The position numbers were made by a program, and so were the translations under genes. The notes under the pieces are model-generated. The model was not told the DNA's origin and made no database searches. It worked only from the letters and a program-made list of their open reading frames with translations. DNA of 64,000 nt from Thalia democratica. Taxonomy: Eukaryota. Every line of letters starts with the position of its first letter. Within the stretch, counting starts at the first letter, position 1. Of the stretch, positions 3,588 to 32,850 are shown in pieces. The stretch spans positions 21,018,001 to 21,082,000 of the forward strand of contig OZ241829.1 in NCBI GenBank assembly GCA_965202585.1, written 5' to 3'.

Positions 3588-3723
3588 CAGGGTTCGGCAG
3601 CCTTACGTAAATCGCGGGCCGCACAAAAAATATAATTTTTATTGTTTTCGAAATATATACTTTTGGCTTGGAGCTCGTCGGACGCAAATTTTGACTTTGA
3701 TGGCCGAAGTTTGCCGACCCCTG
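3588..3723. mobile_element. 136-bp hAT-type MITE
   Basis: TIR CAGGGTTCGGCA / TGCCGACCCCTG with a perfect 8-bp TSD ATTTATAA (3580-3587 and 3724-3731). 8-bp TSDs with CAGGG termini are typical of hAT elements. Confidence 0.9.
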
Positions 3724-6529: not shown

Positions 6530-6848
6530 CTGATCGACATTTCCCTCAAGTAGTGTTGCTAAAACTTCCAAAATTAGAACAATTTTGAGTTCGTAACCGT
6601 TAAGGTAGACAAGACTTCGTTGCTGAAAATCAACACGAAAAATCTGGGTGCTGGATACCGCCAAGCTTGAAGAACGGGTAGCAATTGTGGTCGTAGAAGA
6701 AATGCCGACAGAATTGCATGAAGGTCGGGAATGGTACTTTCCTTGTTTCCAAATCTCGCAGACGCACGGTGATGCAGTTTGGCGAAAGACCAGTAGATGC
6801 ATTTAGATTCACTAAAACTTGCACTGCAGTTTTATTAAAATCAGCCAT
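6530..6848 (-). pseudogene. Family X paralog X2 (left), frameshifted
   Basis: MADFNKTAVQVLVNLN...HFFYDHNCYPFFKLG aligns to X1. There is an internal deletion/frameshift after FFKLG and a further 1-bp deletion (ttcta[c]attttggaagtt) that is shared with the right copy. Confidence 0.8.
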
Positions 6849-9800
6849 TTTTTTCCGATTTACTAAACTCATCTGAAACAAATGAGTTTACTTTGCACTT
6901 AACTCATATGTGAGTTAAGTTAGTTGGTTTCTTAAGCCTACATTCAAATAAATGTGATTGATTCAATATATGATATTTAATTAAGACAATATTGTTAAGT
7001 TAATAAGAACAGACTTCTGTGTAGATAAATTAAAGTAAAAAGGAAGATATTATTCTAAATTGACTCTTTGTTGTTTTGTTCACTTATAATTAAAAAAAAA
7101 AAAAACAAATACTCACGTTTACAAAAAAAATTCAATTAATCTACTTTTTTAAAAATGTAATAATATTATGTTGTCATCATTTAGATAAAAAAACTACGTT
7201 TATAAAAACTATAACAATTAGCTAAGAAAGTTATTTTAATATTTTCTGGTCTAACAAGAGTTAAAAGTACTACCTTTTGATTTCACGCTGTAAAAAGATA
7301 AAATTAAAGCAACTTTAGTTTACGAATATTTTCTTTTATTTTTACTTAAACTTACACATCTTTCTTTAATTCAAGAAAATTTTAAGGTTAATCAAATCTG
7401 CACTGCAATTAAGTTTGGTCTATATCTAACGAAGTATTTTAAAAATATGTGGCTTGAAGTATTTTAAACTATTGTGAGCTAAAATTATGTTCATTTTCAT
7501 TAAGAAATACTTTCTAGCCCCTGTTTTGTAGACCGTTTGTAATCTAATGAACTGTTAAAATTAATTCAGTCGGATGTTGAATTATATTCAATTACTATTT
7601 TTGTCGTCTAAAAAAGAAGGTCACACCAATTTTATACCGTGAGGATTAATTTAAATGTGTTAGTATTTTACTATTTAATCAATTTTTTTTTAAATTAACC
7701 TTGCTTATTTCTACAAGTCCATTATCATTGCATATTTTTAGAATAAAACTAGTTTTTAAGTTACACCTCCAACAATATTGTTTGTTTTTTAATTTAAAAC
7801 TATTTAATCTAGGCACAATTTTATGTAAAACGGACATTCAGATGTATTCCTGTTCAATTTTACAAGTCTGTTACTTACATGTTGTTAATAGTAGAATAAA
7901 ACCAACTTTATATCTTAATGTTCAATGTTTTCATTTTCAAATAACCCAACTTCGGTTAAAAAATTTTATGTAAAGTATAAGCAAAAATTTAAGCGGCAAA
8001 ATTTTCGGTATCCGCTTGACAACTACTAAGTATACAAATAAATTACCAATATTAACCTTTTAAAACTTCAAAATTTTTCTGTTCCAATCGAACCGTACAA
8101 GTTTGAAAGTAATAAACAGTTTGCCTTTTAAACATCCCCTATGCTTTATGGAAAAATTTTGCTTGGAATTGATAAAACTAAACGTTTATTTTAGCAAATG
8201 TATCAGGAGTAAGGTTTTTGTGACTATAGCAGTCGTATTTGCTAGAGTTATAAAACTTAGACCGACAGTTTCTAGCTAGGTTTACTGTTTTAAATATAGT
8301 TTAATTTTAATTGTTTACCTTACATGAACTTTAAGCTTACAATTTATATACTCAAGCACATACAAATGGTTAAAACATTAGTTAAACAAAAAATTAAAAA
8401 ATATTTGATTTGTTCAACTACAAAAAAGAAGTTAGAGTCCTAAATATAACGTTTAAACCGAAAAGTTTTTATTTACTAAGAGATTTTTCGCATTCAAAAA
8501 AATTTACATTTTAAGTCATTTTAAAAAAGTTAGTGAAACAAACTAGATTGTATGCATTTAAGCACTTTAGAAGGAAAGATTAAAATTAAATTATATGTAG
8601 GAACAAAGCATTACTACGAACTTCTATTAAAGTAAGATGAGATTTATCTAGTGCACATTTTCATTTAGCCATAAATTTATTTTGTAAAACTTATTTAAAT
8701 TGTAGTAGGTTTCAAACTACCTTTCGTTTTATTATTTTTAGAGTTTAGCAATTTTCTAACTAAAATTTTTTTCATAATTGTAGAAACATGATTATTATAA
8801 AAACAAGTGATTAAACAAAAAAAGTTTAAACCAAATCAGCTTTAAAAAAAAGCTAAAACATTAAATATTTTCTATTTAAATTTCATGTTTTTTTAAACAT
8901 ACTTGTTTAAGTTAAGTCAATTAAATACATTTTTTGTTAGTTTAAATATGCAATTTTATACTTTAGGTGCTATATCGAATTAGTAGAGTATTGTAATCGT
9001 AGAGAACTAATAAAAATTTTCTATGTAAACAAGTTTTCTATAACTAAACTACTTAATTAAACTCTAAAACTGGTCAATTATGATTAGCTAATTTTGGTTT
9101 TAACTGATTTACAGTTTTTAATCACAAAATGTTTTTCAAAAGTGAAATTTAGAGTTTTTTTCAGTATAATAGTCGCAGAATTTGATTTAAAGAACTATCC
9201 TATTTTGATAAAACTTTTAGCTCTTTATGTCAGTCCAAATTAGTAATTTTATAACAGCTATTAAAGTAATTGTTTTTAGGAACGTATAGTTTAAAAAAAG
9301 ATAAAAAAAAACTAGCAAATTTAATATGTATCAACTCTAGAACAACAGAAAAGGTTGTTCAACAAATTTAATACTTAGAAGTACATGAAGTTTAGTACTA
9401 GAAATATTAAAAAGCATATACTATATGCTGGCAGCGATGAAAAATAAGCAACTTTTTCAAAAAGTTGTGATTATTTGGATGTAAAAATTTAAGTTTTAAA
9501 ACTCTGTTTTTAATGTACGTTCAAGAATTGTTTTAGATAAGTAATACTATTTTTTACAGTTTAGACCTTAAAAAATTATATAAATTTTTATAAATAAATT
9601 ATAAACTTATCCTTAGTTGACAGAGGTTCAAAGTTGACAGAGAAAATTAACATTTATTCAACATTTATTCATAGTTGACAGAGAAAATTAATACTCTAGC
9701 AAATAAATGGCTATAAAACAAACTAAAAAGTTATCATTAAGACCTTAAGTTCCTTTTTTATAAATAACTTATTTAAGTGTTTTGGTAATAGTTCTTATTT

Positions 9801-10288
9801 GGGGCCTTAACTAAATGTCATTTGTTTGTTACTTTCGTAACTTTTGTGCTATTTTCGTTCATAACTTAAAATAAAAAGATTTGTTGATTACTAAGTTATT
9901 GACTAACTATTTAACTAACTATTTAACTAAGTATTTAAGTAAGAAAATGCATTAAAACAATATAATCAGAGTATTGTATGCACTAAATATAATATATAGA
10001 TAAGAGTTAGAACCTTGTGAGGAACTGCAAATTGATACATCAGTTTTTGAATAAAACTTTTATTTTATATTTGAACTGTTTATCTATCATAAACGTTATT
10101 TAGTTTTCAACTAAGCATTAATAAATAAACAAGTCAATAGTTAAACTTATTTTATTGATATGAGAACAAAAGCAGGAGTACAGAAAGAAAACCGGTTTCT
10201 AATCAAAACATCTCAAACGAAAACTTTGCACAGTATTAAACACAACTAAGAAATACATAAAGCTCACAAATTAACTAGTCAAGATAAT

Positions 10289-11406
10289 TTACAACAAAGT
10301 AACTTTTCCCGTGAACAAAGTTTGGTCTTCGTATAAAATCATGAACAAAAAAGGATGATCAACTGTGAAATAGATTTTTCTAGTACCTCTTGAACTTTGT
10401 TTAACACGACTCACTTTAACTCCAGTTGCTGCAGCAGCTTCAGTACCTTCTTCACTTGTCTCAATGAAAGCCTTGTGAACTACTTCAGTCACAAAAAGTC
10501 TTGAATCTCCTGCAAACATTGCGCTTAAGTCAGATTTTCTCTCATCAAAAGCGTCTTTGATTCCCAACGAGCGCAGAGTTTCGTACAAGCTTGCTTCAAA
10601 TTCGATTTTGAACTTTGGCATTTTCAAAAAAATTCGCGTTTCACTGAAACTACTAGGGTCTTTAAGACTTTCAATAGTTTGGACGTCAAGTTTTTCGATC
10701 ACATTTTTCAATCCAAACCTTTCATCAGGTAAAACTATCAGCATTCTGAAATCTACTTGCTTGTAATGAATTTCCACACACTTGAACCCTTTTTCATCAA
10801 ATGAAGCAAACGAATAGTACTTTTCCTGTTTCATCATTTTAACAGTAGATGTTTTTTCTTCGGTACAATAGAATGGAGCATCTCTAGTGTCACTTAACTT
10901 GAACTTATCATACCAATCACCTTTGAAGTAGATACAACTAACTAAAACACATACAGTATCAGGATCCAAGTCGCTAAACAGATCTTCAATTTTTCCATTA
11001 GTACAATCTGCAACCCATTTATTGATTATATTTTTCGATTCGTCTGCATTCTCTCGTAATTTAAAGACTGAATGTGGCTTTTAAAAGCAGATTCCATGTC
11101 ACGTTTGTAGTTAGCATCAATTTCAAATTCTTCTGAAGGAAAAACAGAATTAGCAAGCTTGATTTGTAAGCCTTTGGAGTTGTAAGTTAATACATCATTC
11201 AGCTTTTTAAGATTTGAAAGAAGTTGTTCATCCTTCACAATTCCTAGTGCCTCTTCAAGCTGCTTCTTGGTTGCTCCATTAGAACCTATAAGCAGCATGG
11301 AAAGAGCAAGCGAAACGCTCAGTGGTGAAAAGAAAATGTTCTTGTTTTCATCATTGCTTTCACAAAGCTTATTAAAAAGATTGACGTCAAACGAATTTAC
11401 ATTCAT
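10289..11406 (-). pseudogene. Serpin type A copy A1, intracellular (no signal peptide), 1-bp frameshift at ~11052
   Basis: Two ORFs (11026-11406, 10289-10969) rebuild a full serpin (NIFFSPLSV, IYFKGDW, MPKFKIE, EEGTEAAAAT, DHPFLF). Compared with A2, tgcattctc[c]tcgtaat lacks one base. This could also be a sequencing error. Confidence 0.88.
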
Positions 11407-12174
11407 AATGATTTTAAACCCAACTAACCTTGAAAAGTAAAATATTATGTGTAATCGAGATTTTTAAATGTGTTTGTACAAGTTGTACATTTTATGTTTT
11501 AGCTTGAATAGTTAAATAGTTAAAGACTTTTCAAATTTTACTTTTCATTGAAGCTTTTAATTGTACTGATATATTTACAACTTTTAAAATTTTTATATAA
11601 CATTTAAAGATGCTTCACCTCAAAAATAGCATGAAATAGTTAAATTTTTATAGTAAAATTTCTTTAAAGTAAAGTATACTGGTAATAGATGTCTGTAAAA
11701 CTTTTACAGGTCTCCATAGCTTCTGACTACATAAACTATAAGCTATAATAATCTATTTATATTTGTTTTAAGTAACAATAGCAGCATAGAGGGTTTTTCT
11801 AAAATCCTTTGTAAATAAAAACATAAAAACATTAGTATTTAAAAACAACCAGGATTAAGTAAAAAATGACACCGGGTTCATTATTTTAACTTGTTTAAAG
11901 TTAGGGTAGTTTTTTACCTGATCTTTGCTTTTAAACTTTCAACTATTTTGTTCAACTATTTTGTTCTTTTTTCAATTTCACTGTTTTCAAATTTTATTAT
12001 GCAAGATATTTAGATGTACAATTTATACATAAAGAATAAGGTTTAGTTTATATCGCTAAATAAATGTTTTTGAGAAGGCCTAAATAAAACAACTTCAAAA
12101 TATGTGAAACACAACCGTATAAGAACTGATGTTCAATCAATATTTTAATTTTTCAAAGCTTACTATGATTTTTA

Positions 12175-12199
12175 CGACACTTTTGGCGCTAATGAGCTA
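12175..12199 (-). promoter_or_regulatory. Conserved upstream motif CGACACTTTWGGCGCTAAYGAGCTA (E2F-like core TTTGGCGC); also at 16752, 20585, 23848, 28910, 34167, 37430, 41263
   Basis: Retained about 750-770 bp upstream of the ATG of both A- and B-type serpins, although the surrounding DNA has diverged. The function is inferred. Confidence 0.5.
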
Positions 12200-13239
12200 C
12201 ATTTTGTCGATCTGTTGGAAGTAAATACTACAGCGTATCAAACTAGTTAGAAAATAAACTATTATTTTGATAGTTTTTTGAAATAAAAATAATTGTGGAT
12301 AGCGTAAACTTTGATAATAAATATGGTTGAAGTCCTAATTGTTTGATATAAATTTGGTGTTCTTAGTTCTAGTAGCTCAAAATTAGTTTTCGTAGTTCGA
12401 GTTTCTTATTGCTTTTTATTGGAACAATATTTTCTTTACTCTGTAATGTTCATTTGTTGTAATAAAATCTGTACCTAAAATAAAGTACTGTTTGTCATTT
12501 AGATTTTATAAATGGTATTCTAAATTAAAGTTGAAGCTATTATTACAGGACTTTTAAATAAGAAATTGAAAAGCTATTTTATATTTGAACTGATAAAATA
12601 TATTTGAATTAAAGCAAAAGCTTCAACTATAAATTTTAAATTACTTTTATCAAATTCATATCTTTTTTAGATACTTTTTCAAGTAAATATAAAATAACTA
12701 TGAAGATAAGGTGTGAATCATTTCTAACATTTTATTTGAATAAATTTTGTTTACTTAAATTAAAAAATTAAAATGTTACAATTTAATCATTTATGCATTA
12801 AGCTATTAAGGTCGTCTTTTATATAACCTAGAATAAAAATTAACAACAAAAATCAGCTAAGTAAAATAAACAGTCAGACTTTGTACGATTAGTTGAATGA
12901 CAGCAAAGTAAAAACCTAATATTAACTTTCAAAACAAAAAAAAAACAAGTTTTAAACAAACAACTTTGAAAGTATTTTGTTTAAAAATTTAGCCTTTGGT
13001 GAGAAACGTGAGTCTAGTATTATTAATTTATTTATAAATTAGGTAAGTCTAAAACAAATGAACTCAACTTGTGTTTACTTATAAAAATATTTTTCATTGT
13101 TTTCCAGCGAATTTAAGCAACTATTGAGTTTTATATTTAGTCAGACAAAAAAGAAAAGCTTCCAATTTTATTGTTGTGTTTAAATATATTTCATAATAAA
13201 ACATTACTTTCAATAATAATTTATTTAGATATCCTAAAC

Positions 13240-13420
13240 TTGCAGTGCACAGTAAAATATGCACGCCTGTGTGTACAGGTACACATTGTGAAACCACTGT
13301 ATTAGCTTCTTATCTAATACGTAGGGTTAATGTAGTTCTACTTAGTTTAACAGAACTTCTGTTGCACATCCAAACGCTTTATGTAAATCAGGAAGTGGAG
13401 TAATACCGCCCCTGCGGACG
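13240..13420. other. Conserved ~170-bp non-coding element (copies 17817-17997, 25805-25995, 27797-27990, 32045-32234, 40042-40222)
   Basis: A GC-richer island that is better conserved between diverged units than its flanks. It contains GGGGCGG, ACTTCCTG, TGCRCNC motifs and short palindromes. It could be an enhancer or an ncRNA. Confidence 0.55.
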
Positions 13421-14127
13421 AAAAAGTAAATGATTAGTTAGTAAAGAAGCGATGTCTGGAACTTTAATTATAAGTTGCGAAGACAACACTTAAGTTATTC
13501 ACCTCCGTTTTTATTAAAAACCTGTAAAGTCTTCGTAATGTACTTACAATAATATAATGAACTTATTTATAATACTAAGCATTTTAAATAAACAATTTTC
13601 ATAACTTTTTCATATTTTATTTGAAAATCATGAATTAGTCAACAGAAAAAAAACTAGGATTGGAAAAAAAATATGTTTAATCATTTTTGATACTTAAAAA
13701 TTACTACTTTGTTTAGTATTATATGTATTATGGTATTATTTGCTTCTTGAAAAATAGATAGTTTAAGTTTAAACTGTTGAACTAAATTTCATGAAATATT
13801 TCAAACAAACATTTAAACTTTATAACTGAGCAATATTTTAATTGTGATATTGGCTTGTGAAGAAAATGAAAAGTTTAGTTTGAATTTTGATTCTTTAATT
13901 TTTAAGTTAATCAACTGTCATTTTACATAACAATTGATATATTACAATAGTAATCATTTAATTCTTGTGTTTAATTTATTGGCGACTCATGTATAAACAC
14001 ATGAGAAGAGAGATTAAACCTAAAACCAACAAAATGCTTAATGAAAATTATGCATAGTATCTAACACAACTAATTTATAAAAAATACAAAACAAGAAACA
14101 TTTAAGAAAGTAACGACTCATGAAATC

Positions 14128-14301
14128 TTACAATGAAGTAACTTTTCCCATTAACAAAGTTTGGTTTTTGTATAAAATCATTAACACAAATGGATATTGA
14201 ACTACAAACTTTTTTGGTTTCAGATAAACGTTTTCGTAATCATAAACCAATTCTAATCCAGTTGCTGCAGCAGCTTCAGTTGCTTCATCATTTACCTCAA
14301 T
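14128..14301 (-). pseudogene. Serpin B C-terminal fragment (hinge, RCL and C-terminal strands only)
   Basis: Matches 18705-18878 and is truncated at the tandem-duplication junction. Confidence 0.9.
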
Positions 14302-14864
14302 TATTATTCTAAAGTGATATTAATTTGAACGAGATTTGTGAACGAGAAACTTACAACTATTTCTATTGAAAACTTAATACTGAACTATTTTCGTAAAAAC
14401 TCTTGTAACATATGTTCAAGTTTTTGTACTTAAAAGTAATTTGATTACTTTAGAAAAACATTTAGCTAACAGAAAAAATCTATAAACTGGCAAATAAATT
14501 GCTATAAAACTGTAAATAAGAAAATGCTATAAAACAATATATTCAGATATAGTATGCATTAAATATGATATATAAATAAAGTCAGAACCTTGTGAGGAAC
14601 TGCAAATTGATACATCAATTTTTAAATTAAAACTTTTATTTTATATTTGTACTATTTATCTATTATATAAGTTATTTAGTTTTCCATTAAGCATTGATAA
14701 TTAAACAAGTCAATAGTTGAACTTATTTTATTAATATGAGAACAAAAGCAGGAGTACAGAAAGAAAACCGGTTCCTAATCAAAACATCTCAAACGAAAAC
14801 TTTGCACAGCATTAAACACAACTTAGAAATACATAAAGCTCACAAAATAACTAGTTATGAAAAT

Positions 14865-15983
14865 TTACAATGAAGTAACTTTTCCCGTGAACAAAGTTTG
14901 GTCTTCGTATAAAATAATGAACAAAAAAGGATGATCAACTGTGAAATAGATTTTTGGAAAACTTCTTGAACTTTGTTTAACACGTCCCACTGCGATTCCT
15001 GTTGCTGCAGCAGCTTCAGTTCCTTCTTCACTTGTCTCAATGAAAGCCTTGTGAACAACTTCAGTCACAAAAAGTCTTGAATCTCCTGCAAACATTGCGC
15101 TTAAGTCAGATTTTCTCTCATCAAAAGCGTCTTTGATTCCCAACGAGCGCAGAGTTTCGTACAAGCTTGCTTCAAATTCGATTTTGAACTTAGGCATTTT
15201 CAACAAAATTCGCGTTTCACTGAAACTACTAGGGTCTTTAAGACTTTCAATAGTTTGGACGTCAAGTTTTTCGATCACATTTTTCAATCCAAACCTTTCA
15301 TCAGGTAAAACTATCAGCATTCTGAAATCTACTTGCTTGTAATGAATTTCCACACACTTGAACCCTTTTTCATCAAATGAAGCAAACGAATAGTACTTTT
15401 CCTGTTTCATCATTTTAACAGTAGATGTTTTTTCTTCGGTACAATAGAATGGAGCATCTCTAGTGTCACAAAACTTGAACTTATCATACCAATCACCTTT
15501 GAAGTAGATACAACTAACTAAAACACATACAGTATCAGGATCCAAGTCGCTAAACAGATCTTTAATTTTTCCATTAGTACAATCTGCAACCCATTTATTG
15601 ATTATATTTTTCGATTCGTCTGCATTCTCCTCGTAATTTAAAGACTGAATGTGGCTTTTAAAAGCAGATTCCATGTCACGTTTGTAGTTAGCATCAATTT
15701 CAAATTCTTCTGAAGGAAAAACAGAATTAGCAAGCTTGATTTGTAAGCCTTTGGAGTTGTAAGTTAATACATCATTCAGCTTTTTAAGATTTGAAAGAAG
15801 TTGTTCATCCTTCACAATTCATAGTGCCTCTTCAAGCTGCTTCTTGGTTGCTCCATTAGAACCTATAAGCAGCATGGAAAGAGCAAGCGAAACGCTCAGT
15901 GGTGAAAAGAAAATGTTCTTGTTTTCATCATTGCTTTCACAAAGCTTATTAAAAAGATTGACGTCAAACGAATTTACATTCAT
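14865..15983 (-). pseudogene. Serpin type A copy A2, nonsense mutation at codon 55 (GGA to TGA, 15819-15821)
   Basis: ATG at 15983 is in frame with the 316-aa ORF, separated only by one TGA where A1 has GGA. Confidence 0.9.
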
Positions 15984-18704
15984 AATGATTTTAAACCCAA
16001 CTAACCTTGAAAAGTAAAATATTATGTATTATCGAGATTTTTAAATGTGTTTGTACAAGTTGTACATTTTATGTTTTAGCTTGAATAGTTAAATAGTTAA
16101 AGACTTTTTAAATTTTACTTTTCATTGAAGCTTTTAATTGTACTGATATATTTACAACTTTTAAAATTTTTATATAACATTTGAAGATGCTTCACCTCAA
16201 AAATAGCATGAAATAGTTAAATTTTTATAGTAAAATTTCTTTAAAGTAAAGTATACTGGTAATAGATGTCTGTAAAACTTTTACAGGTCTCCATAGCTTC
16301 TGACTACATAAACTATAAGCTATAATAATCTATTTATATTTGTTTTAAGTAACAATAGCAGCATAGAGGGTTTTTCTAAAATCCTTTGTAAATAAAAACA
16401 TAAAAACATTAGTATTTAAAAACAACCAGGATTAAGTAAAAAATGACACCGGGTTCATTATTTTAACTTGTTTAAAGTTAGGGTAGTTTTTTACCTGATC
16501 TTTGCTTTTAAACTTTCAACTATTTTGTTCAACTATTTTGTTCTTTTTTCAATTTCACTGTTTTCAAATTTTATTATGCAAGATATTTAGATGTACAATT
16601 TATACATAAAGAATAAGGTTTAGTTTATATCGCTAAATAAATGTTTTTGAGAAGGCCTAAATAAAACAACTTCAAAATATGTGAAACACAACCGTATAAG
16701 AACTGATGTTCAATCAATATTTTAATTTTTCAAAGCTTACTATGATTTTTACGACACTTTTGGCGCTAATGAGCTACATTTTGTCGATCTGTTGGAAGTA
16801 AATACTACAGCGTATCAAACTAGTTAGAAAATAAACTATTATTTTGATAGTTTTTTGAAATAAAAATAATTGTGGATAGCGTAAACTTTGATAATAAATA
16901 TGGTTGAAGTCCTAATTGTTTGATATAAATTTGGTGTTCTTAGTTCTAGTAGCTCAAAATTAGTTTTCGTAGTTCGAGTTTCTTATTGCTTTTTATTGGA
17001 ACAATATTTTCTTTACTCTGTAATGTTCATTTGTTGTAATAAAATCTGTACCTAAAATAAAGTACTGTTTGTCATTTAGATTTTATAAATGGTATTCTAA
17101 ATTAAAGTTGAAGCTATTATTACAGGACTTTTAAATAAGAAATTGAAAAGCTATTTTATATTTGAACTGATAAAATATATTTGAATTAAAGCAAAAGCTT
17201 CAACTATAAATTTTAAATTACTTTTATCAAATTCATATCTTTTTTAGATACTTTTTCAAGTAAATATAAAATAACTATGAAGATAAGGTGTGAATCATTT
17301 CTAACATTTTATTTGAATAAATTTTGTTTACTTAAATTAAAAAATTAAAATGTTACAATTTAATCATTTATGCATTAAGCTATTAAGGTCGTCTTTTATA
17401 TAACCTAGAATAAAAATTAACAACAAAAATCAGCTAAGTAAAATAAACAGTCAGACTTTGTACGATTAGTTGAATGACAGCAAAGTAAAAACCTAATATT
17501 AACTTTCAAAACAAAAAAAAAACAAGTTTTAAACAAACAACTTTGAAAGTATTTTGTTTAAAAATTTAGCCTTTGGTGAGAAACGTGAGTCTAGTATTAT
17601 TAATTTATTTATAAATTAGGTAAGTCTAAAACAAATGAACTCAACTTGTGTTTACTTATAAAAATATTTTTCATTGTTTTCCAGCGAATTTAAGCAACTA
17701 TTGAGTTTTATATTTAGTCAGACAAAAAAGAAAAGCTTCCAATTTTATTGTTGTGTTTAAATATATTTCATAATAAAACATTACTTTCAATAATAATTTA
17801 TTTAGATATCCTAAACTTGCAGTGCACAGTAAAATATGCACGCCTGTGTGTACAGGTACACATTGTGAAACCACTGTATTAGCTTCTTATCTAATACGTA
17901 GGGTTAATGTAGTTCTACTTAGTTTAACAGAACTTCTGTTGCACATCCAAACGCTTTATGTAAATCAGGAAGTGGAGTAATACCGCCCCTGCGGACGAAA
18001 AAGTAAATGATTAGTTAGTAAAGAAGCGATGTCTGGAACTTTAATTATAAGTTGCGAAGACAACACTTAAGTTATTCACCTCCGTTTTTATTAAAAACCT
18101 GTAAAGTCTTCGTAATGTACTTACAATAATATAATGAACTTATTTATAATACTAAGCATTTTAAATAAACAATTTTCATAACTTTTTCATATTTTATTTG
18201 AAAATCATGAATTAGTCAACAGAAAAAAAACTAGGATTGGAAAAAAAATATGTTTAATCATTTTTGATACTTAAAAATTACTACTTTGTTTAGTATTATA
18301 TGTATTATGGTATTATTTGCTTCTTGAAAAATAGATAGTTTAAGTTTAAACTGTTGAACTAAATTTCATGAAATATTTCAAACAAACATTTAAACTTTAT
18401 AACTGAGCAATATTTTAATTGTGATATTGGCTTGTGAAGAAAATGAAAAGTTTAGTTTGAATTTTGATTCTTTAATTTTTAAGTTAATCAACTGTCATTT
18501 TACATAACAATTGATATATTACAATAGTAATCATTTAATTCTTGTGTTTAATTTATTGGCGACTCATGTATAAACACATGAGAAGAGAGATTAAACCTAA
18601 AACCAACAAAATGCTTAATGAAAATTATGCATAGTATCTAACACAACTAATTTATAAAAAATACAAAACAAGAAACATTTAAGAAAGTAACGACTCATGA
18701 AATC

Positions 18705-19832
18705 TTACAATGAAGTAACTTTTCCCATTAACAAAGTTTGGTTTTTGTATAAAATCATTAACACAAATGGATATTGAACTACAAACTTTTTTGGTTTCAG
18801 ATAAACGTTTTCGTAATCATAAACCAATTCTAATCCAGTTGCTGCAGCAGCTTCAGTTGCTTCATCATTTACCTCAATGCAAGCTTTGTGAACTACTTCG
18901 GACACATGAAATTTACCATTTGGTTGCAGAGCATCTTCAGACATTGCACTAAAATCTGCATTTGCTGAATCAAAAGTGTCTTTTATTCCCAACGAACGCA
19001 GAATTTCGTTCAAATTTGCTTCATATTCGATTTTAAACTTTGGGACTCTCAGCGAAACGAATTCTCTACTGAAATTTTTACCGTCTTTAATGCTTTCGAT
19101 TGTATTCTTGTCTAGTTTATTGATTACACTTTCCAATTCATATTTTCCGTTGGGTAAAATTATCAGCATACTAAAATCTGGATTCTTGTAAGGAATTGTT
19201 ACAGACTTGAACTCTTTTTCATCATCTGAAAGAAACGAATAATAATCCTTTTTTACCATCATTTTAACAATAGAAGTCTTTTTATCGGTACAATAGAATG
19301 GTAAATCTTTTCTGTAACGGGACTTGAACATGTCATACCAATCACCTCTAAAATAAATACAACTAACTAGAACACATGCAATATCAGGGCTCATTTTACT
19401 GAATAATTCATTAATTTTTTCATTAGTACAACCTTCAACAAAATAATTGATAACAGCTATCGCGTTTTCTGCACGGTTTTTGTAGTCCAAAGACTGAATT
19501 TGGCATTTTAAAGCAGATTGCATGTCATCTTTGTACTCTGGGATTATCTGAAACTTATCTGATGGAAAGACAGAGTTAGCAAGTTTGATTTTCAAACCAT
19601 CGGAGTTAAAATTGACTACACCACTCAGCTCTTTAAGATTTGAAAGAAGTTTTACATCCTTCACAATTCCTAGTGCCTCTTCAAGCTGCATCTTGGTTGC
19701 GCCATTAGATCCTTTTAGTAGCATGGAAAGAGCGAGCGAAATGCTCAGTGGTGAAAAGAAAATGTTCTTGTTTTCATCATTGCTTTCACAAAGTTTTTTG
19801 AAAATACTGACATCAAGCGAATTGAAATTCAT
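18705..19832 (-). CDS. Serpin type B copy B1, 375 aa, intracellular, predicted P1 Asp
   Basis: Full-length ORF with NIFFSPLSI, IYFRGDW, VPKFKIE, hinge DEATEAAAATG and RCL LELVYDYENV. No signal peptide. Confidence 0.95.
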   Translation of the reverse strand: MNFNSLDVSIFKKLCESNDENKNIFFSPLSISLALSMLLKGSNGATKMQLEEALGIVKDVKLLSNLKELSGVVNFNSDGLKIKLANSVFPSDKFQIIPEYKDDMQSALKCQIQSLDYKNRAENAIAVINYFVEGCTNEKINELFSKMSPDIACVLVSCIYFRGDWYDMFKSRYRKDLPFYCTDKKTSIVKMMVKKDYYSFLSDDEKEFKSVTIPYKNPDFSMLIILPNGKYELESVINKLDKNTIESIKDGKNFSREFVSLRVPKFKIEYEANLNEILRSLGIKDTFDSANADFSAMSEDALQPNGKFHVSEVVHKACIEVNDEATEAAAATGLELVYDYENVYLKPKKFVVQYPFVLMILYKNQTLLMGKVTSL

Positions 19833-20776
19833 ACTGATTTTAGACCCACAAACCTTAAAATTTTAATTATTATTAACCATTTAAGTAGTTAAAATTCATT
19901 TTATGTTTTATCTACTAACTAAAGAAATGTTAAAAAAGTTGTTCAAATAAAATACAGATTTTTCTGCATTTTTACAACGTTACAAGACAACTACAGTTTT
20001 TATAATATTTTGAAGTGGCCCTCATGTCAAAAATTTTGCTTGAAGATTGATAAGCATAAAGAGGTTTGTGTAATAATGTAAAACAAAACAAATCAAATAT
20101 TTATTGAGGGAAATTTTAATAAAAAAAAACACTTTTGCTACATACAGCCATATTTTAGTAAACTTTAAAACTATTCTTAACTAGTTCTTAAAAAAGTACT
20201 TCAAATTCAGAAATAACATTATTAGGTCTAATCATTAAGAACACAGTGTTAACAAATTGTTGAAATAGAATTTGTTATAACATAATATTACTAAAAATTC
20301 AAAATTATTAGAATTATAAATATCTGTATTTTAATCATCGTTCATTTTTACACTTTTAACTATTTATTTTAAGCATTTAATTATTTTGAATACCAGTTTG
20401 AATCAGATTTAAATGTATAATTTATTCACTGTAAATAAGATCTAATACATTTAAACATTTAAGAACTTGATAAATGACTATGAGTGAACTTAATTTAAAC
20501 CAAATACTATGTATGAAACACAACCATAAAATAAGGTATTTGCAATATTTTTTTTTACTTCGCAATGATCACTTTGATTCGTCACGACACTTTAGGCGCT
20601 AACGAGCTATTTTTTTTCGTTGTTTTGAATAGGAGGTAACTATGTTTTTTAGGTTTGTAACCATTCACTGTTACAACGTAGTTACTATTTTATTACTGCT
20701 ATTACTGGTTTAGTTTGCAAAATTATTATCCTTAAATAAAATGTAAGCACTTTCAGATTAAATCTTCAAAACGCAG

Positions 20777-20984
20777 CTAATTAACTTCTCTCTCATTAAT
20801 CCTTGCTGCAACTTCCATAGTGTAGAGGTAGTCCAGATTCTTAACCATAACCATGAATGTAAACAGACTTCGTTGCTGTAATTCAACACGACAAATCTGC
20901 GTGCTAGCATATCTGGCTGCAGGTGTCCTCGCCAAAAACGAGGCTCAGTTGTGCGAGTAGAGGACAAAAATCTTGAAGGTTAAA
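20777..20984 (-). pseudogene. Family X paralog X3, 5'-truncated and frameshifted
   Basis: The repaired reading gives RFVVLNYSNEV-FTFMVMVKNLDYLYTMEVAARINEREVN*, homologous to the X1 C-terminus. It lies about 950 bp upstream of serpin B on the same strand. Confidence 0.75.
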
Positions 20985-21667
20985 TTTTTATGACACGACA
21001 TTTAAAGTATATGACTACTTTTTTAGTTTTTATTTGTTTTACAGATAGCAGATAAAAATTAAATAGTTACTAGTTAAAAATAAAATATAGTATGATGTAG
21101 CTAAATTCAGTTTGAAACTTAATTACTTTAATTTTTAAATCCTTTCTTGTTATTTTCTTTCTAACAAAATCAGTATTTAAAATTTTCAGTATATGTATTT
21201 ACTATCAGTATTTTCACAAATCTTAACTTCAATAAAACTCTTAGTTCTTACTATATTTTACTATAAGTTCTTTTTTATTTAGACAAATAATTAAAACTCA
21301 TTTTTATTTCATATATGCATTGTTTTTAGATATATATATTTTGATAAATAAATTAGTATGAAACATTAACTTTTATTGATTGTAAAAGATTTCAAAGGCG
21401 CTAAAAGGCAGTTATGATTTCTATAAAAAATTTTTTTTCAGTAATCTAAGTACATAACTGAAAGAAGTTAGCTGATCGCGGAAAGCAAAAATTTTTGAAC
21501 AAACTCGATACTGAAGAATACTCAAAATACACTTAATTTAAAGCATCTATAATTTATACTTAAATAAGTAAATTATTTTTTAATACTTCAAAGTTAAGAT
21601 GTATTCCAATATAAAAACAATTAAAAGATTTTTCGATATACAGTGTTGACTTGCATTTTTTAATGTC

Positions 21668-21755
21668 TTGTCCTGGACAAGACGGTAAAAAGTATCCGTG
21701 GTGTAAGACTCGATAACCGAAATGTTTTGTCGTGACCCAGGTCTAAGCACCATAT
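21668..21755. repeat. ~90-bp dispersed repeat, inverted copy at 24495-24583 (SINE/MITE-like)
   Basis: TGGTGTAAGACTCGATAACCGAAATGTTTTGTCGTGACCCAGGTC vs reverse complement TGGTGTATGACTCGAGATAACCGAAAGGTTTTTTCGTACACCAGGTC. The second copy appears inserted relative to the paralogous region at 12720-12780. Confidence 0.55.
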
Positions 21756-21988
21756 ATTTAAAGCGCTTTTTTTAATTTTTATCAAACAATAGTAAACGAT
21801 TTTTTTACATAATACTATTAAACCTCTACAAACTTTCACTTGAATATTATTCACAATATATAACAACGACTCGTAGATAGTTTAGCGAAACTTTAATGAT
21901 CGATCATATAAAAATTCACATTTAATTTAAAACAAAATCACTAAATAGCCCAACAGCATTTGGGCTCAAAATTCCACAAGAGCGTATT

Positions 21989-22285
21989 CTATTTCGAAAA
22001 CAATTTGCTTGCTAGATGAAACCCGTACTTGATAAGCACAATCACGTATCCAGGATTGCTGTAAAGCACTTTAGCCAGGGGAAACATGAAAATGCAGATC
22101 ACGATCTGACAGAAGACTACGAGGGGGAACTCCAGGATCCGGAAGGTGGTTTTCACCAGGAACTTCAATGGTTTGTAGAGGATTCGGAGGATGAGGCATG
22201 CAATGATGAAGAAGATTGTAGCAAAGATCGTTTCCATTTGAAAAACTTTCACCATTTCGAACATGACGTTGAAAAGAGCGTCCAT
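21989..22285 (-). CDS. 98-aa hydrophobic membrane microprotein with three 15-aa repeats
   Basis: ATG ORF with strong C/G-ending codon bias (ttc, atc, ctc) in AT-rich DNA. It has long hydrophobic segments and Pro at 39, 54 and 69. Confidence 0.7.
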   Translation of the reverse strand: MDALFNVMFEMVKVFQMETIFATIFFIIACLILRILYKPLKFLVKTTFRILEFPLVVFCQIVICIFMFPLAKVLYSNPGYVIVLIKYGFHLASKLFSK

Positions 22286-23269
22286 TGTGAGAAACAGTTT
22301 AAAATTTTACCTGAAATTTTTAATAATGTTTGTGTGAATGATCTAAAATTATAGAATAAATAATAGAATAAATATAATAATTATATAAAATAAATATAAA
22401 ATAATAGAATAAATAAAAACATTTGTAAGCTAATTGCACTTGATTTAACTTGATTTAACTCGTTAAAAAATAAAAAGAGCGTGTTGCAGCCCTGACAAAA
22501 CAGTAAATAGATACTAAAACATACTGATAAACAAACAAAACCACCATAGATACGAAAATGTATTTTTACTACTTGTAAAGTTTTATCTGCACACACAATA
22601 ACATTTAAAGTTATGAACAAATTTTCATAATCAGAAGAACTACTATGAATGACTTGTATTTACTACAAAAGCTGTAAAGGTGAATAATTCAAATAAAGTC
22701 AGTGATTACTAGTTGTACTGAAACAGAATGATAAGTACAAGCTATTTTATAGGGAAAACTTGCTGTGGAAGCATATTTGAAAGAGCATTAAAATAAGAAA
22801 GAAGAATACTGTTATATACTATTTATTTTACTCCTTAAGTTTTTATACGCATACCATTATAAGCATACAGAGTATCTCCTCTAGACATAACGTTAATCAA
22901 CTATTTTCGCCGAGTTAAAACAAAGGGTCAGTTTTAATATGTTTGTAAAATATCTTAATGTATGGTTTTATAACTAAGTGTTAATTTTATAAACTTACTT
23001 ATCAAGTTATACTCTATTAATAACTTATAGTTTAAATACATAAAGTTAGTTTTTTTTTACCAAAAAACCATGTATTAGATAACTTGTTGTATATAAAGTG
23101 ACAATTAAATTTGTGAAAAATTTATGAAAAATTGACACAGTCATTTTGTTTTACTTAAACTAAATAAAAAAATTAAAATGATATAAAAGAGTAGTTGTTA
23201 AATAAATAAACCTTGATTTATTTTTACGTAGATGTCGCAAGTTTTCAAAATTTTTCTACCTAACATGTA

Positions 23270-23365
23270 AAAATTTCTCAAGTTCCAGGTTTTTCGAATT
23301 TTTATTTTTGCCTTTATTGTGAAATTCCAGGCTTTTCTAGGTTTCCAGGTAAAGTGGCAAGCCTG
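23270..23365 (-). mobile_element. Solo end of a hAT-like element (mirror 34674-34769)
   Basis: Reads CAGGCTTGCCACTTTACCTGGAAACCTAGAAAAGCCTGGAATT with repeated CCTGGAA subterminal motifs. The other TIR was not found. Confidence 0.5.
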
Positions 23366-26240
23366 ATTATAAAATGTAATAAAAAAAACTTATGGGATTT
23401 TGCAATTGAGTCTCACAGACTACAAATATATTAAAAAAATATTTAAAAGACACATCATCTAAACAGGTTTGTCTTAGTTGATCAACGTGATAAACTATGA
23501 TTTTTAATAAAATTTTCATTAGGTTTTATTTATCTAAGTCACACAAACTTTAATGTAGTAAGATATTATATGAAAAACCCTATTCTCTAGTTAAATAAAA
23601 TTAAAAAGAAATTTTTTTCTTTCAACTGTTTTTCTTAGTCCCTTATTTGTTTTCACTATTTTAAAATTTTCTTATGCAATATGTTCAGATGTACAGTATA
23701 TACATTATGAATAAGGTTTAGTTTATAATAGGTTACATATTTTGAGAGTGCTTTAACTATATAAATTAAGTATATATGAATCACAACAATAAAATAACTA
23801 ATTTTCAAAAATATTTTTGAATTTTTCAAAGCTTAATATAGTTTTTACGACACTTTTGGCGCTAATGAGCTAAATTTTGTCGATCTGTGGGAAGTATATT
23901 ATATAGTGTAGTAAATTTGCTAGTAAATAAACTGTTATTTTAATACTTTTTTGAAATAAAAACAAGTATGGATAGCGTAAATTTTAACAATAAATACTGT
24001 TGACGTCTTAATTATTTGATATAAGTTTAGTGTTCTTAGTTCTAGTAGCTCTTTGATTTAAAATTATTTGTAATAGTTCGCGCTTCCTATTGCATTATAA
24101 GAACAATATCTTTCTTTATACTATTATGTTTAATTTCTTGTATTAAAAACTGAATTTAACAACAAAATATTGTTAGTCATATAAATTTGATAATTTAATA
24201 ATCTATACTAAGTTTGAAGCTGATACCACAACTTTTTTTAAATGGAAATTGAAGTTTGTTTTTGTATGAACAGCTGTTTTATAGTTGAATTAAAATCAAT
24301 TAATTAAAACAATAGTTTCAACTATAAATTTTAAATTACTTTCATCAAATTCATGTCTTTATTAGCTGGTTTTTTTTTAGTAAATATAAAATAACTTTAA
24401 AAATAAAGTGTGAACCATGTCTAATACATTTTTAAAATCATTTCACTCTATTTAATATAAATATGTTTATTGAACGAAATCAACGCGCTCAAATATTTGG
24501 TCCAAGGACCTGGTGTACGAAAAAACCTTTCGGTTATCTCGAGTCATACACCAGAATACAGTTTAAAGTCATATCCAGAGCAATTAGTAATGAAAAAATT
24601 ACTAAAACGTTAAAATGTTGCAATTTGATCATTTTATACATAAAGCTAGTAAGGTTTTGTTTTTTGTAAAACTAAAAAAAAAATTAATAACATATATCAG
24701 CAAAGTAAAATAAACAGTCAGATTTTATATAATTAATTGAATAATAGCAATGTAAAAAACTAATACTATTTTCCATAACAAAATAAGCAAGTTATCTAAG
24801 TAAATGACTGATGTTAAAAAGTATGTTGTTTAAAAATATAGCGTTTAGTGAGAAATATCGGTCTAGTATTAATGACTTATTTATAAACTAAGTAATTCTC
24901 AAACAAATAAATTCAACTTGAGTTTAGTTATAAAATTTTTATTTTGATTTTCGGTAAATTTAAGCAAGTATTGAAGTTTAAATTTAATCAGACAAAAAAG
25001 AAATACTTCCAATTTTGTTTTTTTCATAAATACATAAATTCAAAAATTTTATTTTTAATAAAAGCTTATTTAGATAACCTAAATTTTATTTTACAAACAA
25101 ACTGCAGAAAAAATATCGATAAAGTCTTTAACATCAAAAGCTGTTTGCAATAAGTTACAGGAAACTAAACCTGAACAAAAAAAATCTTGAAATAATAATA
25201 AATTATTATTGTAAGTTTATTGTCATACGATGGACCCAGGAATCAAAACCTAGGCCACTTATACAGAAAGACATACAACAAAAAGACAAAAATAAACCAA
25301 AATTGTACATTAAAAATGAAAAAAACTGAGTTTAACTAATTAAAGTTTAAAATTAACATAAAAACACAAAAATTATAACACAAAATTTATAATTCCGGTG
25401 CTTCCGAAAAGAGAACAACAATATTCTACTCCATCTTCACCCGAACAAATGGTTTCACTCCAAAACTGGTTTCACTTTCATTCGAACAGCTGGCTTCACA
25501 TTATTTGAACAACTGGTTCAGCCTTAATTTGAGTAACTGGTTTAACTTTTATCCATACAACTTGTTTCACTTTTATTCGTATAACTAGAACCGCTTTTAT
25601 CTAAACAACGTGGTTCACTTTTGTTAGGAGAGCCTGCTTCATATTTACTTTTAAATCTTTAATACTCAGATAACTCAGCGTTTGTTGAATAAATTAAATA
25701 TACGCTATTTTTTTTTATGTCTTAGTAAATTATTAGTATTTGAAATTTTGTTATTTGATATTTTCAAAATAAATGTAATATAGAACGGTTTTTCACCTCA
25801 CTAAACTTGTAGTGCACAGTAAAATTATTTCTATGCACACTAGTGTGCACAGGTACACACTGTGAAACCACTGTATTAGCTTCTTATCTACTACGTAGGG
25901 TTAATGTAGTTCTACTTAGTTTAACAGAGTTTCTGTTGCACATCCAAACGCTTTATAATAATCAGGGAGTGGAGTAATACCGCCCCCTGCGGACAAAAAA
26001 GTAAATTACTAGTTAGTAAAGAAGCGATGTATGGATTTTTAGGTATAAGCTGCGAAGATAACACATTAAAGTTATTCACTTCCGTTTTTAATTAAAAATC
26101 TACAAAGGCTTTGCAAAGTTAATTAGAAAGCTGGTGATAACTTATTTATAATATTAGGCATTCCAATATACAATTTGCATAATTTTTTCATATTTATTTG
26201 AAAATCGTGAATTAGTCAACAGTAAAAACACTACGTTTGA

Positions 26241-26340
26241 NNNNNNNNNNNNNNNNNNNNNNNNNNNNNNNNNNNNNNNNNNNNNNNNNNNNNNNNNNNN
26301 NNNNNNNNNNNNNNNNNNNNNNNNNNNNNNNNNNNNNNNN
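26241..26340. other. Assembly gap (100 N, size unknown)
   Basis: Run of exactly 100 N. Confidence 1.
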
Positions 26341-26396
26341 TACTTAAATGGTTAATAATAATTAAAATTTTAAGGTTTGTGGTGTCTAAAATTAGT

Positions 26397-26808
26397 ATGA
26401 ATTTCAATTCGCTTGATGTCAATATTTTCAAAAAACTTTGTGAAAGCAATGATGAAAACAAGAACATTTTCTTTTCACCACTGAGCATTTCGCTCGCTCT
26501 CTCAATGCTACTGATAGGATCTAATGGCGCAACCAAGAAGCAACTTGAAGAGGCACTAGGAATTGTGAAGGATGAAAAACTTCTTTCGAATCTTAAAGAG
26601 CTGAGTGGTGTAGTCAATTTTAACTCTGATGGTTTGAAGCAATGATGATGAAGCAACTGAAGCTGCTGCAGCAACTGGATTAGAATTGGTTTATGATTAC
26701 GAAAACGTTTATCTGAAACCAAAACTGTTTGAAGTTCAATATCCATTTGTGTTAATGATTTTATACAAAAACCAAACTTTGTTCATGGGAAAAGTTACTT
26801 CGTTGTAA
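26397..26808 (+). pseudogene. Serpin B3 with about 720-bp internal deletion and frameshift
   Basis: The N-terminal part (to DGLK) is joined through a short filler to the hinge/RCL/C-terminus in another frame. TGA stops follow the junction. Confidence 0.9.
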
Positions 26809-28149
26809 GTTATCATGAGTCGTTATTTTCTGAAATGTTTTTCTTTTTATGTAATATATACATTAGTTGTGTTAGATGCTACGCAGAATTTTGTTTAAAT
26901 GTTTTGTTTTTTTTAGGTCTAATATCTTTCATGTGTTTGTATATTGGTCATCAATAAAATAAACTTAAGAAATGAATTACTTATTTACTAGTATATAACA
27001 AAAGCAATATATTCTTTATTGACATTAAAAAACAAAGACAGTAATAAGTAGCGATGATTAAACTTCATATTAGTAAATTTCTAAACATAATTTCAATTTT
27101 CCAGGAAGTAAATATTAATTAGTATTTCTATTGATAAGTCGCAAATTTTAGTCAGCGAAACCGGTTTGTAAACAAATTTTTAATTTGCATAACTTTAACT
27201 AAACAAGGGCTTTACTTTCCAGTAAGTTGGGCAACATTTTTTAGTTAAAACAAATAACTATATACACTTGTTATATAAAATAACATTTGATTAATTTAAA
27301 AGTTAAAGGATCAAAGCTTAAACTAACTTTCTTGTATATTACACAAGATTATTGCATAGTTGAAATATAATAAAGTTTAAATGTTTATCAATTTAAGTTT
27401 CTGGTTTTGTTATACATATTTAATAAAACTTTGTTCAACAGTATAAACTTCAACTGTATCTGTTTTCAAGAAGCTAATTAAATCATAATACTTAAAATTA
27501 TAAACAAAGTAGTAATTTTTAAGAATCAAAAACAATAAACTTTTTTTTTTTTCAAACGTAGTGTTTTTACTGTTGACTAATTCACGATTTTCAAATAAAT
27601 ATGAAAAAATTATGCAAATTGTATATTGGAATGCTTAATATAATAAATAAATTATCACTATCTTTCTAATTAACTTTGCAAAGCCTTTGTAGATTTTTAA
27701 TTAACAACGGAAGTGAATAACTTTAATGTGTTATCTTTGCAGCTTATAACTAAACTTCTAGACATCGCTTAATTACTAACTAATCGTTTACTTTTTCGTC
27801 CGCAGGGGCGGTATTACTCCACTTCCTGATTTACATAAAGCGTTTGGATGTGCAACAGAAGTTCTGTTAAACTAAGTAGAACTACATTAACCCTACGTAG
27901 TAGATAAGAAGCTAATACAGTGGTTTCACAGTGTGTACCTGTGCACACTAGTGTGCATAGAAATAATTTTACTGTGCACTACAAGTTTAGTGAGGTGAAA
28001 AACCGTTCTATATTACATTTATTTTGAAAATTTCAAATAACAAAATTTCAAATACTAATAATTTGCTAAGACATAAAAAAAAATAGCGTATATTTAATTT
28101 ATTCAACAAACGCTGAGTTATCTGAGTATTAAAGATTTGAAAGTAAATA

Positions 28150-28400
28150 TGAAGCAGGCTCTCCTAACAAAAGTGAACCACGTTGTTCAGATAAAAGCGG
28201 TTCTAGTTATACGAATAAAAGTGAAACAAGTTGTATGGATAAAAGTTAAACCAGTTACTCAAATTAAGGCTGAACCAGTTGTTCAAATAATGTGAAGCCA
28301 GCTGTTCGAATGAAAGTGAAACCAGTTTTGGAGTGAAACCATTTGTTCGGGTGAAGATGGAGTAGAATATTGTTGTTCTCTTTTCGGAAGCACCGGAATT
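28150..28400 (+). repeat. Degenerate 24-bp minisatellite, probable fossil coding repeat (copies 32399-32650 +, 25390-25640 -)
   Basis: Units aaaagtgaaccacgttgttcagat / aaaagcggttctagttatacgaat / aaaagtgaaacaagttgtatggat / aaaagttaaaccagttactcaaat / taaggctgaaccagttgttcaaat. Confidence 0.7.
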
Positions 28401-28519
28401 ATAAATTTTGTGTTTCATTTTTAACTGCTTTTTTCTAAAACAAACATTTTTATCTGCTATTTACAACAAATTTTTTAATTTATTAAAACTAAAATGGTAG
28501 TCTTATACTTTAAATGACG

Positions 28520-28738
28520 TGTCATAGAGATGCGAACTTCAAGATTTTTGACAACATCTCCTCTACGTGCACAACTGATACCCGTTTTCCAAGCTTGACG
28601 AGGACACCTGCAGCCAGATATGCACGCAGATTTGTCGTGTTGAGCAACGAAATTCTGTGTACATTCATGGTTACTAATCTAAACTACCTCTACACTATGG
28701 AAGTCGCAGTAAGGATTAATGAGAGTGAAGTTGATTAG
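28520..28738 (+). pseudogene. Family X paralog X3b, degenerate
   Basis: The repaired reading gives HLLYVHN*YPFSKLDEDT...RFVVLSNEILCTFMVTNLNYLYTMEVAVRINESEVD*. It lies upstream of serpin B2. Confidence 0.75.
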
Positions 28739-29679
28739 TTTTGAAGATTTTATATGAACGTGCTTAAATTTTATCTAAAGATAATGATTTTGCAGTATTA
28801 ATTACCCGAATTAACTTCTTTAGTTATATTAGTAGAGAATAGGTTTTAACAATGAATAGTTTCAAACCTAAAAATATAGTTACCTCCTATCCCAGATAAC
28901 GAAAAAATGTAGCTCGTTAGCGCCTAAAGTGTCGTGACGAATCAAATAGATCATTGCAAAGTAAAAAAATAATTATTGAAAACCACTTATTTTATGGTTG
29001 TGTTTCATACATAGCAGTTGGTTTAAAATAGGTTCACTCATAATCATTTATCAAATTTTCTAAAAACTTATTAAAACTTATTTATAATGTGCAAGTTATA
29101 CATGTAAATCTGATTCAATGTGATATTTAAAATAATTAAAGGCTTAAAATAAATAGTTAAAAGTGTAAAAATGAACGATGATTAGAATACAGATATTCGT
29201 AATTCTAATAATTTTGAATTTTTATTAATATTATATTATAACAAATGTTATTTCAACAATTTGTTAACACTGTGTTCTTATTGATCAGACCTTAGAATGT
29301 TATTTCTGAATTTGAAGTACTTTTTTAAAAACTAGTTAAAAATAGTTTTAAAGTTTACTAAAATATGGCTGTAGTTGTAAAAGTGATTTTTTTTAAATTT
29401 CCCTTAATGAATATTTTATTTTTTTTTGTTTTACACTATAACATAATCTCTTTATGCTTATCAATCTTCAAGCAAAATTTTTGACATGAGGGTCACTTCA
29501 AAATATTATAAAAACTGTAGTTGTCTTGTAACGTTGTAGAAATGCAGAAAAATCTGTAACTTATTTTAAGGACTTTTTTAAGAGATCTTTAGTTAGAAGT
29601 TAAAACATAAATTGATTTATAACTACTTAAATGGTTAATAATAATTAAAATTTTAAGGTTTGTGGTGTCTAAAATTAGT

Positions 29680-32759: not shown

Positions 32760-32850
32760 GTTGTATGTCTTTCTGTATAAGTGGCCTAGGTTTTGATTCC
32801 TGGGTCCATCGTATGACAATAAACTTACAATAATAATTTATTATTATTTC
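32760..32850 (+). mobile_element. Possible LINE/SINE 3' tail remnant (mirror 25189-25279)
   Basis: A T-rich tract, then the stem-loop GGCCTAGG-ttttgatt-CCTGGGTCC, then AATAAAC and a TAA-rich tail. It resembles non-LTR 3' ends; the family cannot be assigned. Confidence 0.35.

Follow-up and report, generated by a model that had tools for sequence, protein, structure and literature searches.

The serpin gene B1 of the tunicate Thalia democratica encodes an intact, leaderless protein whose reactive-centre loop presents an aspartate at the predicted P1 position, where an acidic residue is uncommon among its homologues. B1 almost certainly belongs, as an intact member, to a lineage-specific family of leaderless serpins without introns. 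The gene lies in a cluster that is a palindromic, tandemly duplicated birth-and-death array, located within the 64,000-nucleotide stretch of DNA analysed here (the window; Table 1). With its P1 Asp, B1 is a legitimate, if unproven, candidate for a caspase inhibitor. Its Asp bait is best regarded as a single young variant from a fast-diversifying loop repertoire, not as a conserved caspase-control system.

Table 1. Serpin genes, repeats and other features of the window. Positions count from the first base of the window.
Feature	Position	Strand	Basis
B1, intact leaderless serpin gene, single exon, 375 aa	18705-19832	-	ORF and Pfam
B1 reactive-centre loop, P17 to P5′, codons 323-344	18801-18866	-	Translation and AF2 exposed segment 331-344
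Asp339 codon (GAT), P1 by canonical count	18816-18818	-	Hinge count and ungapped alignment
B2, every base identical to B1, opposite inverted-repeat arm	38207-39334	+	tblastn, repeat comparison
B3, open frame, 91% amino acid identity to B1	29680-30807	+	tblastn
B-del, internally deleted B pseudogene	26397-26805	+	tblastn
B-frag, 3′ fragment from codon ~319, identical to B1	14128-14310	-	tblastn
A1, A-type serpin with 60% identity to B1; assembly shows an in-frame stop at codon 55	14865-15983	-	
A2, identical copy of A1	42056-43174	+	
A0, A-type serpin, frameshift near codons 118-126	10289-11406	-	
Inner inverted-repeat arm, 11,932 bp	14309-26240		100% identical to the reverse complement of 31799-43730
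Other inner inverted-repeat arm	31799-43730		Repeat comparison
Tandem direct duplication, period 4,577 bp	9936-18878		9936-14301 vs 14513-18878, 98.6% identical
Orphan ORF family, ~85-120 aa	2043-2411	-	
Orphan ORF family	6630-6881	-	
Orphan ORF family	47608-47925	+	
Orphan ORF family	52089-52433	+	
Orphan ORF family, fragment	near 20758-20967	-	
Acidic 112-aa ORF, adjoining B1	22016-22354	+	
Acidic 112-aa ORF, adjoining B2	35685-36023	-	
297-aa ORF with two type-I KH domains	57859-58752	-	Pfam KH_1

Gene structure and predicted fold of B1

The window is very AT-rich, with a G+C content of 20–35%, and contains few long open reading frames, most of which encode serpins. The B1 frame stays open for 375 codons despite a genomic G+C content of 26%, at which stop codons arise easily. 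The Pfam Serpin family (PF00079) covered B1 end to end (E = 4.5e-91, profile positions 4–369 of 370), with the C-terminus at the usual serpin position. There was no N- or C-terminal extension, and the layout was of the clade-B type (ov-serpin). The best match among solved natural serpins was SERPINB1 (4ga7, E = 2e-48), a leaderless clade-B protein.

An AF2 model of B1 built with 70 homologues had a mean pLDDT of 88.6 and matched solved serpins with Foldseek TM-scores of 0.85–0.92. Its sole disordered, low-confidence stretch was residues 331–344, which correspond to the exposed reactive loop. The hinge (residues 325–331) was modelled as a strand, and the top structural matches were cleaved or latent serpins. 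We discarded this strand as evidence for the state of the loop, regarding it as a modelling habit.

The absence of a signal peptide, claimed in the initial annotation, was borne out. In a HMMER alignment the N-terminus of B1 fell five residues short of the SERPINB1 start, and neither a signal peptide nor a hydrophobic leader was found in it, the first 40 residues having no hydrophobic stretch apart from the conserved helix B. An in-frame stop is located 10 codons upstream of the start codon, and signal-peptide-like sequence was also absent from B1 relatives with longer N-termini. An AG ~21 nt upstream of the ATG could serve as a splice or trans-splice acceptor, and, because the intervening 21 nt are open in frame, a spliced exon may lie upstream of B1.

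The reactive loop and its P1 aspartate

The hinge and loop of B1 read D323-E-A-T326-E-A-A-A-A-T-G-L-E-L-V-Y338-D339-Y340-E in translation, exactly as the initial annotation had quoted them. With Thr326 as P14, Asp339 is P1, LVYD occupies P4–P1, and Tyr340 is P1′. This count, on which the initial annotation had based its P1 Asp, agreed with two ungapped HMMER alignments from the hinge. In the first, Asp339 lay opposite the P1 Met of the alpha-1-antitrypsin (AAT) loop in a conserpin-AAT chimera (6ee5); in the second, it lay opposite Cys344 of SERPINB1 (4ga7), with Tyr338 opposite Phe343.

The same hinge count was made in 108 homologues whose hinge could be recognised. In 92 of them P1′ came out as Ser, Cys, Gly or Ala, matching the established pattern and confirming that the canonical register is sound in this set. 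The closest family members likewise gave ordinary P1/P1′ pairs under this count, e.g., M/S, K/C, Y/S, F/A, and R/R. The P1 position was occupied by Arg in 28 homologues, Thr in 27, Lys in 15, Tyr in 6, and Glu in 5. None of the 108 had Asp at P1 and none had Tyr at P1′, in line with the earlier remark that acidic P1 residues are uncommon.

The B1 hinge is of the inhibitory type, with Thr326 at P14 and alanines at P12–P9 (Ala328–331), and departs from the family at two positions. The P15 residue is Ala325, a replacement of the usual Gly that had been pointed out before; Gly was found here in 103 of the 108 homologues and Ala in none. At P17, B1 has Asp323, while 107 of 108 homologues had Glu and none Asp. 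Both replacements are conservative, and we would expect them to lower inhibitory competence yet still to permit it.

Copies of B1 and reliability of the assembly

A tblastn search of the window with B1 returned ten serpin segments. The open B3 gene had the same loop as B1 from P17 to P2′, six changes within P3′–P12′, and changes at positions that are invariant or nearly invariant in the family (S42F, L115F, G163V, Y180C, L261M, and P264S). In B-del, the first 81 codons are joined out of frame to the last ~53; its loop is kept and combines states of B1 with states of B3. B-frag is cut at the junction of the tandem duplication, each unit of which contains one A gene together with the 3′ portion of a B gene. 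All three A-type copies are broken in the assembly, A1 and A2 by the stop and A0 by the frameshift. In the A-type neighbours, an Arg directly precedes the canonical P1, and the family may therefore use a register that is shorter by one residue.

The inner inverted-repeat arm on the left stops exactly at a gap of 100 Ns (26241–26340), and the spacer of the palindrome (26341–31798) carries B-del and B3. B2 does not provide independent evidence, because it lies in this 100% identical repeat of 11,932 bp that ends at a gap. The inverted duplication itself is real, since identity between the inverted outer arms (2–9610 and 44848–54493) is 96% and a further tandem unit of 4.58 kb is present in the left arm; we therefore rejected the explanation that the repeat is purely an assembly artefact. 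For the complete identity of the inner arms beside the gap, we suspect either a very recent arm-to-arm gene conversion or an effect of assembly.

These copies qualify two statements of the initial annotation. It had described the Asp-bearing loop as fixed in B1, B2, and B3; B3 and the two fragments do share P17–P2′ with B1, but B2 is not independent, and the chance of such sharing at the observed divergence of 9% is 0.16. It had also described the gene as amplified. Several B copies are indeed present, but there is only one good B sequence, as B3 is degraded, two copies are fragments, and B2 lies in the suspect repeat.

Short-read contigs from four runs (three samples) all disagreed with the assembly at three positions. 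They read C at 15821, which would turn the codon-55 stop of A1 into Gly, C at 19420, which would turn Glu138 of B1 into the family-consensus Gly138, and T at 19807, which would turn Ser9 of B1 into the family-consensus Asn9. Because of these disagreements at B1 codons 9 and 138 and at the A1 stop, the assembly is not fully reliable here; either contigs of paralogues were placed at this locus or the assembly differs from the individuals that were read. The contigs from runs with this stretch spanned genes and spacers alike, as expected of DNA, and none of the runs is on record as RNA. One contig (two runs, same sample) matched both flanks of positions 18770–18833 and lacked the 64 bases between them, where P6 to strand 1C is encoded; the matching flanks were short (25–27 nt). 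The skip hints at paralogues or alleles that have a common scaffold and a swapped loop.

Selection on the B lineage

The comparison of B1 and B3 gave a dN of 0.040, a dS of 0.085, and a dN/dS of 0.47 (binomial P = 0.012), indicating net purifying selection. The replacements were unevenly distributed. The P3′–P12′ segment held 6 of the 34 (Poisson P = 3.6e-4), while P17–P2′ had none, the only difference there being a double synonymous change in Leu336 (TTG/CTA). The contrast in replacements between P8–P2′ and P3′–P12′ was significant (Fisher P = 0.005); the lack of replacements across P17–P2′ was not significant alone (P = 0.16).

B1 was off consensus at 10 of 67 highly conserved columns, including P15 (Gly to Ala) and P17 (Glu to Asp), compared to a median of 2 for the other sequences. 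When the changes were polarised on 17 relatives, about as many derived replacements were assigned to B1 as to B3. By these measures, the B lineage looks constrained but loosened.

Relatives and phylogenetic position

In a word-indexed search of 5.8 billion proteins, the nearest sequences were from ENA, lay on short contigs, and were at most 63% identical to B1. The best of them was A-like, and no B-type relative was found in this collection. One relative, P0014, came from a marine-metagenome contig of study PRJEB4352, which we take to be Tara Oceans. All of the ENA relatives were laid out without a leader, as B1 is, and their loops were hypervariable beyond the conserved T-G; Asp at P1 was absent from the nearest ones. 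JGI metagenomes, scanned also with the peptide pattern VYDYENVY, yielded only serpins of ~30% identity, none of them close. Two of the ENA marine-metagenome relatives, P0001 and P0008, had Lys at P15 and Ile at P14; they are possibly non-inhibitory, because such a hinge is unlikely to insert. Another relative, P0010, had an in-frame duplication within the loop.

In a maximum-likelihood tree, B1 and B3 were placed together on a long stem (0.46), deep within the lineage-specific family. This family was sister to the sampled vertebrate clade-B serpins, with the bacterial serpins outside (support 100/100), in a tree whose only animal sequences were the tunicate family and vertebrate clade B. The identity of B1 to viral serpins was 17–27%, compared to 32–35% to vertebrate clade-B serpins.

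Since its relatives are without a P1 Asp, B1 is nested in its own family, and viral serpins are distant, the Asp bait appears to be a recent, lineage-restricted invention that was not inherited in common with cowpox CrmA. The serpin phylogeny that the initial annotation had proposed as a check thus spoke against descent from poxviral SPI-2, B1 falling within an animal-specific family. Its label "CrmA-like" is apt for the motif L-V-x-D, which matches at three of the four P4–P1 positions, but not for ancestry, given the placement in the tree and the low identity to viral serpins.

Comparison with known serpins

To our knowledge, caspase-blocking serpins with a P1 Asp are known from viruses (CrmA/SPI-2 and Serp2) or a parasite (NbSPN14). 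Like CrmA/SPI-2 and the cross-class myxoma serpin Serp2, B1 is a leaderless, presumably intracellular serpin with Asp at its predicted P1. It shares with CrmA the P4 Leu and the P3 Val, as well as the Ala-rich hinge T-E-A-A-A-A-T, and differs from it in having Tyr instead of Ala at P2, Tyr instead of Cys at P1′, and Ala instead of Gly at P15. The B1 loop is of standard length, and that of CrmA is presumably one residue shorter. CrmA, whose P4–P1/P1′ residues are LVAD/C (PMC2315678), has been described as a minimal serpin (PMC7863939), whereas B1 is of full size with 375 aa. The likeness of B1 to CrmA is confined to the bait and does not reflect kinship by descent.

Human SERPINB9 (PI-9), with the loop VVAE/C (PMC2315678), inhibits granzyme B and, weakly, caspase-1 (PMC2213432). 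It resembles B1 in that it is encoded by the host, lacks a leader, is of the clade-B type, and has an acidic P1 residue equally far from the hinge. It is unlike B1 in its P1 Glu and P1′ Cys, its multi-exon vertebrate gene, and its known partner protease.

Human SERPINB1 (LEI/MNEI) is ~33% identical to B1 and has the same size and the same leaderless start. Its adjacent alternative reactive sites, Phe343 and Cys344, align with Tyr338 and Asp339 of B1, and Phe343 is presumably its chymotrypsin-type site. SERPINB1 is reported to react at two active sites, of which one serves enzymes of the elastase type and the other those of the chymotrypsin type (Cooley et al. 2001, cited in PMC13612166).

Another non-viral serpin with a predicted P1 Asp is NbSPN14 of Nosema bombycis, which binds and inhibits a caspase-3 homologue, an effect that is lost in a P1 mutant (PMC11741654). 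NbSPN14 has a signal peptide, is secreted by the parasite into host cells, and clusters with poxvirus serpins (PMC11741654), while B1 is host-encoded and leaderless.

The array itself resembles the rodent Serpina3 and Serpinb clusters and the serpins of ticks and parasitoid wasps, in which a conserved scaffold is likewise combined with hypervariable loops and with birth and death of copies. An Ixodes tick serpin array has an occasional acidic P1 (Glu) of unknown specificity (PMC13116602). The tick and wasp arrays are mostly secreted, unlike the B1 family, which is leaderless and intronless and includes a variant with Asp.

Possible functions of B1

As the hinge is of the inhibitory kind, a suicide-substrate trap is the default expectation for B1. 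The function that we infer presumes expression, inhibitory competence, and a matching target. B1, if made, would stay in the cytosol, and its exposed loop would offer the Asp339-Tyr340 bond (L-V-Y-D/Y) for cleavage. A protease that accepts Asp in its S1 pocket would cut there and form an acyl or thioester intermediate. Insertion of the hinge (Thr326, Ala328–331) into sheet A would then trap the enzyme, in the way that CrmA traps caspase-1 and caspase-8. A caspase would be the best-fitting intracellular target, and a granzyme B-like serine protease with specificity for Asp would be the alternative; the canonical bond would catch only Asp-specific enzymes, for which CrmA and PI-9 are precedents (PMC2315678, PMC7863939). 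The caspase preference is for Glu at P3 and a small residue at P1′. The fit of B1 to a caspase is imperfect, as its P3 Val, although shared with CrmA, is not the optimum and its P1′ Tyr is bulky. An occasional P1 Asp is also to be expected by chance amid hypervariable serpin loops. We consider it rather doubtful that B1 works as a caspase-type trap with Asp at P1.

The bond next to the aspartate may instead be the one that matters. B1 could be a functional cytosolic serpin with its reactive centre at Tyr338 or Tyr340, or one whose P2 residue steers a papain-like enzyme. Its targets would then be chymotrypsin-like or cathepsin-G-like serine proteases or leaked lysosomal cysteine cathepsins, with the Asp merely tuning the subsites; SERPINB1, SERPINB3, and SRP-6 are precedents for such targets. 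A chymotrypsin-like enzyme is a live rival target because Phe343, the second reactive site of SERPINB1, is the residue opposite Tyr338, and both chymotrypsin-like enzymes and cathepsins come into question because Tyr338 and Tyr340 flank Asp339. Tyr or Phe at the canonical P1 of several family members and of 9 of the 108 homologues, together with the A-type Arg one residue ahead of that position, is consistent with this explanation. However, either Tyr register would create an acidic P1′ (Asp or Glu), found in 1 of 108 homologues, and would put the loop one residue off the standard length. Deviating by one residue from the standard loop length usually costs inhibitory efficiency. No protease gene was found within the window. 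It is well documented that intracellular serpins inhibit cathepsins K, L, and S as well as calpain, and recognition driven by P2 is a frequent means by which they protect against lysosomal cysteine cathepsins (PMC7863939, PMC8755814). Overall, we regard a Tyr-centred or P2-steered inhibitor as unlikely.

B1 may also be a decaying or non-inhibitory copy that is unexpressed, substrate-like, or inert, the P1 Asp being a neutral by-product of loop turnover. Its surroundings are consistent with decay, as stops, frameshifts, deletions, or changes of invariant residues mark the three A copies, both B fragments, and B3. B1 itself deviates at 10 of the 67 conserved columns, P15 and P17 among them, has about as many derived replacements as B3, differs between short reads and assembly at codons 9 and 138 (as A1 does at its stop), and has no orthologue among the 5.8 billion proteins or in the JGI metagenome scan. 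Against this stand a frame of 375 codons kept open at 26% G+C, a dN/dS of 0.47 that is significantly below neutral, replacements in B1 that are mostly conservative, a bait side that remained unchanged while the P′ side turned over, and a model that folds confidently. A decaying or inert B1 is a distinct possibility that falls short of being probable.

To return to the Asp-directed trap, caspase control in animals is exerted mainly by IAPs; among host serpins SERPINB9 comes nearest, with glutamate in place of aspartate. Should B1 trap caspases, an animal lineage would have evolved caspase control by serpins independently, and B1 would offer a simple entry point into tunicate cell-death regulation. 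The broader proposal, that a cytosolic serpin encoded by a chordate traps caspases at a P1 Asp and represents the first, independently arisen host counterpart of the viral CrmA/SPI-2 strategy, appears improbable to us; if true, this counterpart would have arisen within a fast-evolving repertoire of leaderless serpins. If not, B1 would illustrate how a diversifying serpin array samples an unusual bait, and that P1 counting alone over-predicts function.

Neighbouring open reading frames

A family of orphan ORFs is arranged symmetrically in the outer arms of the palindrome, with two subtypes that are ~57% identical. It had no Pfam match at E ≤ 10. Its AF2 model was unusable (pLDDT 43), and the pattern was beta-beta-alpha-beta-beta-beta. 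These results neither supported nor refuted the idea that the family encodes apoptosis-related beta-grasp adaptors (CIDE-N/PB1). The acidic ORFs of 112 aa in the two inner arms are identical to each other and matched no Pfam family. The two KH domains of the 297-aa ORF were recognised with E = 7.9e-19; this ORF has repeated acidic Q/E-rich linkers and lies in a region of locally higher G+C content (34.5%).
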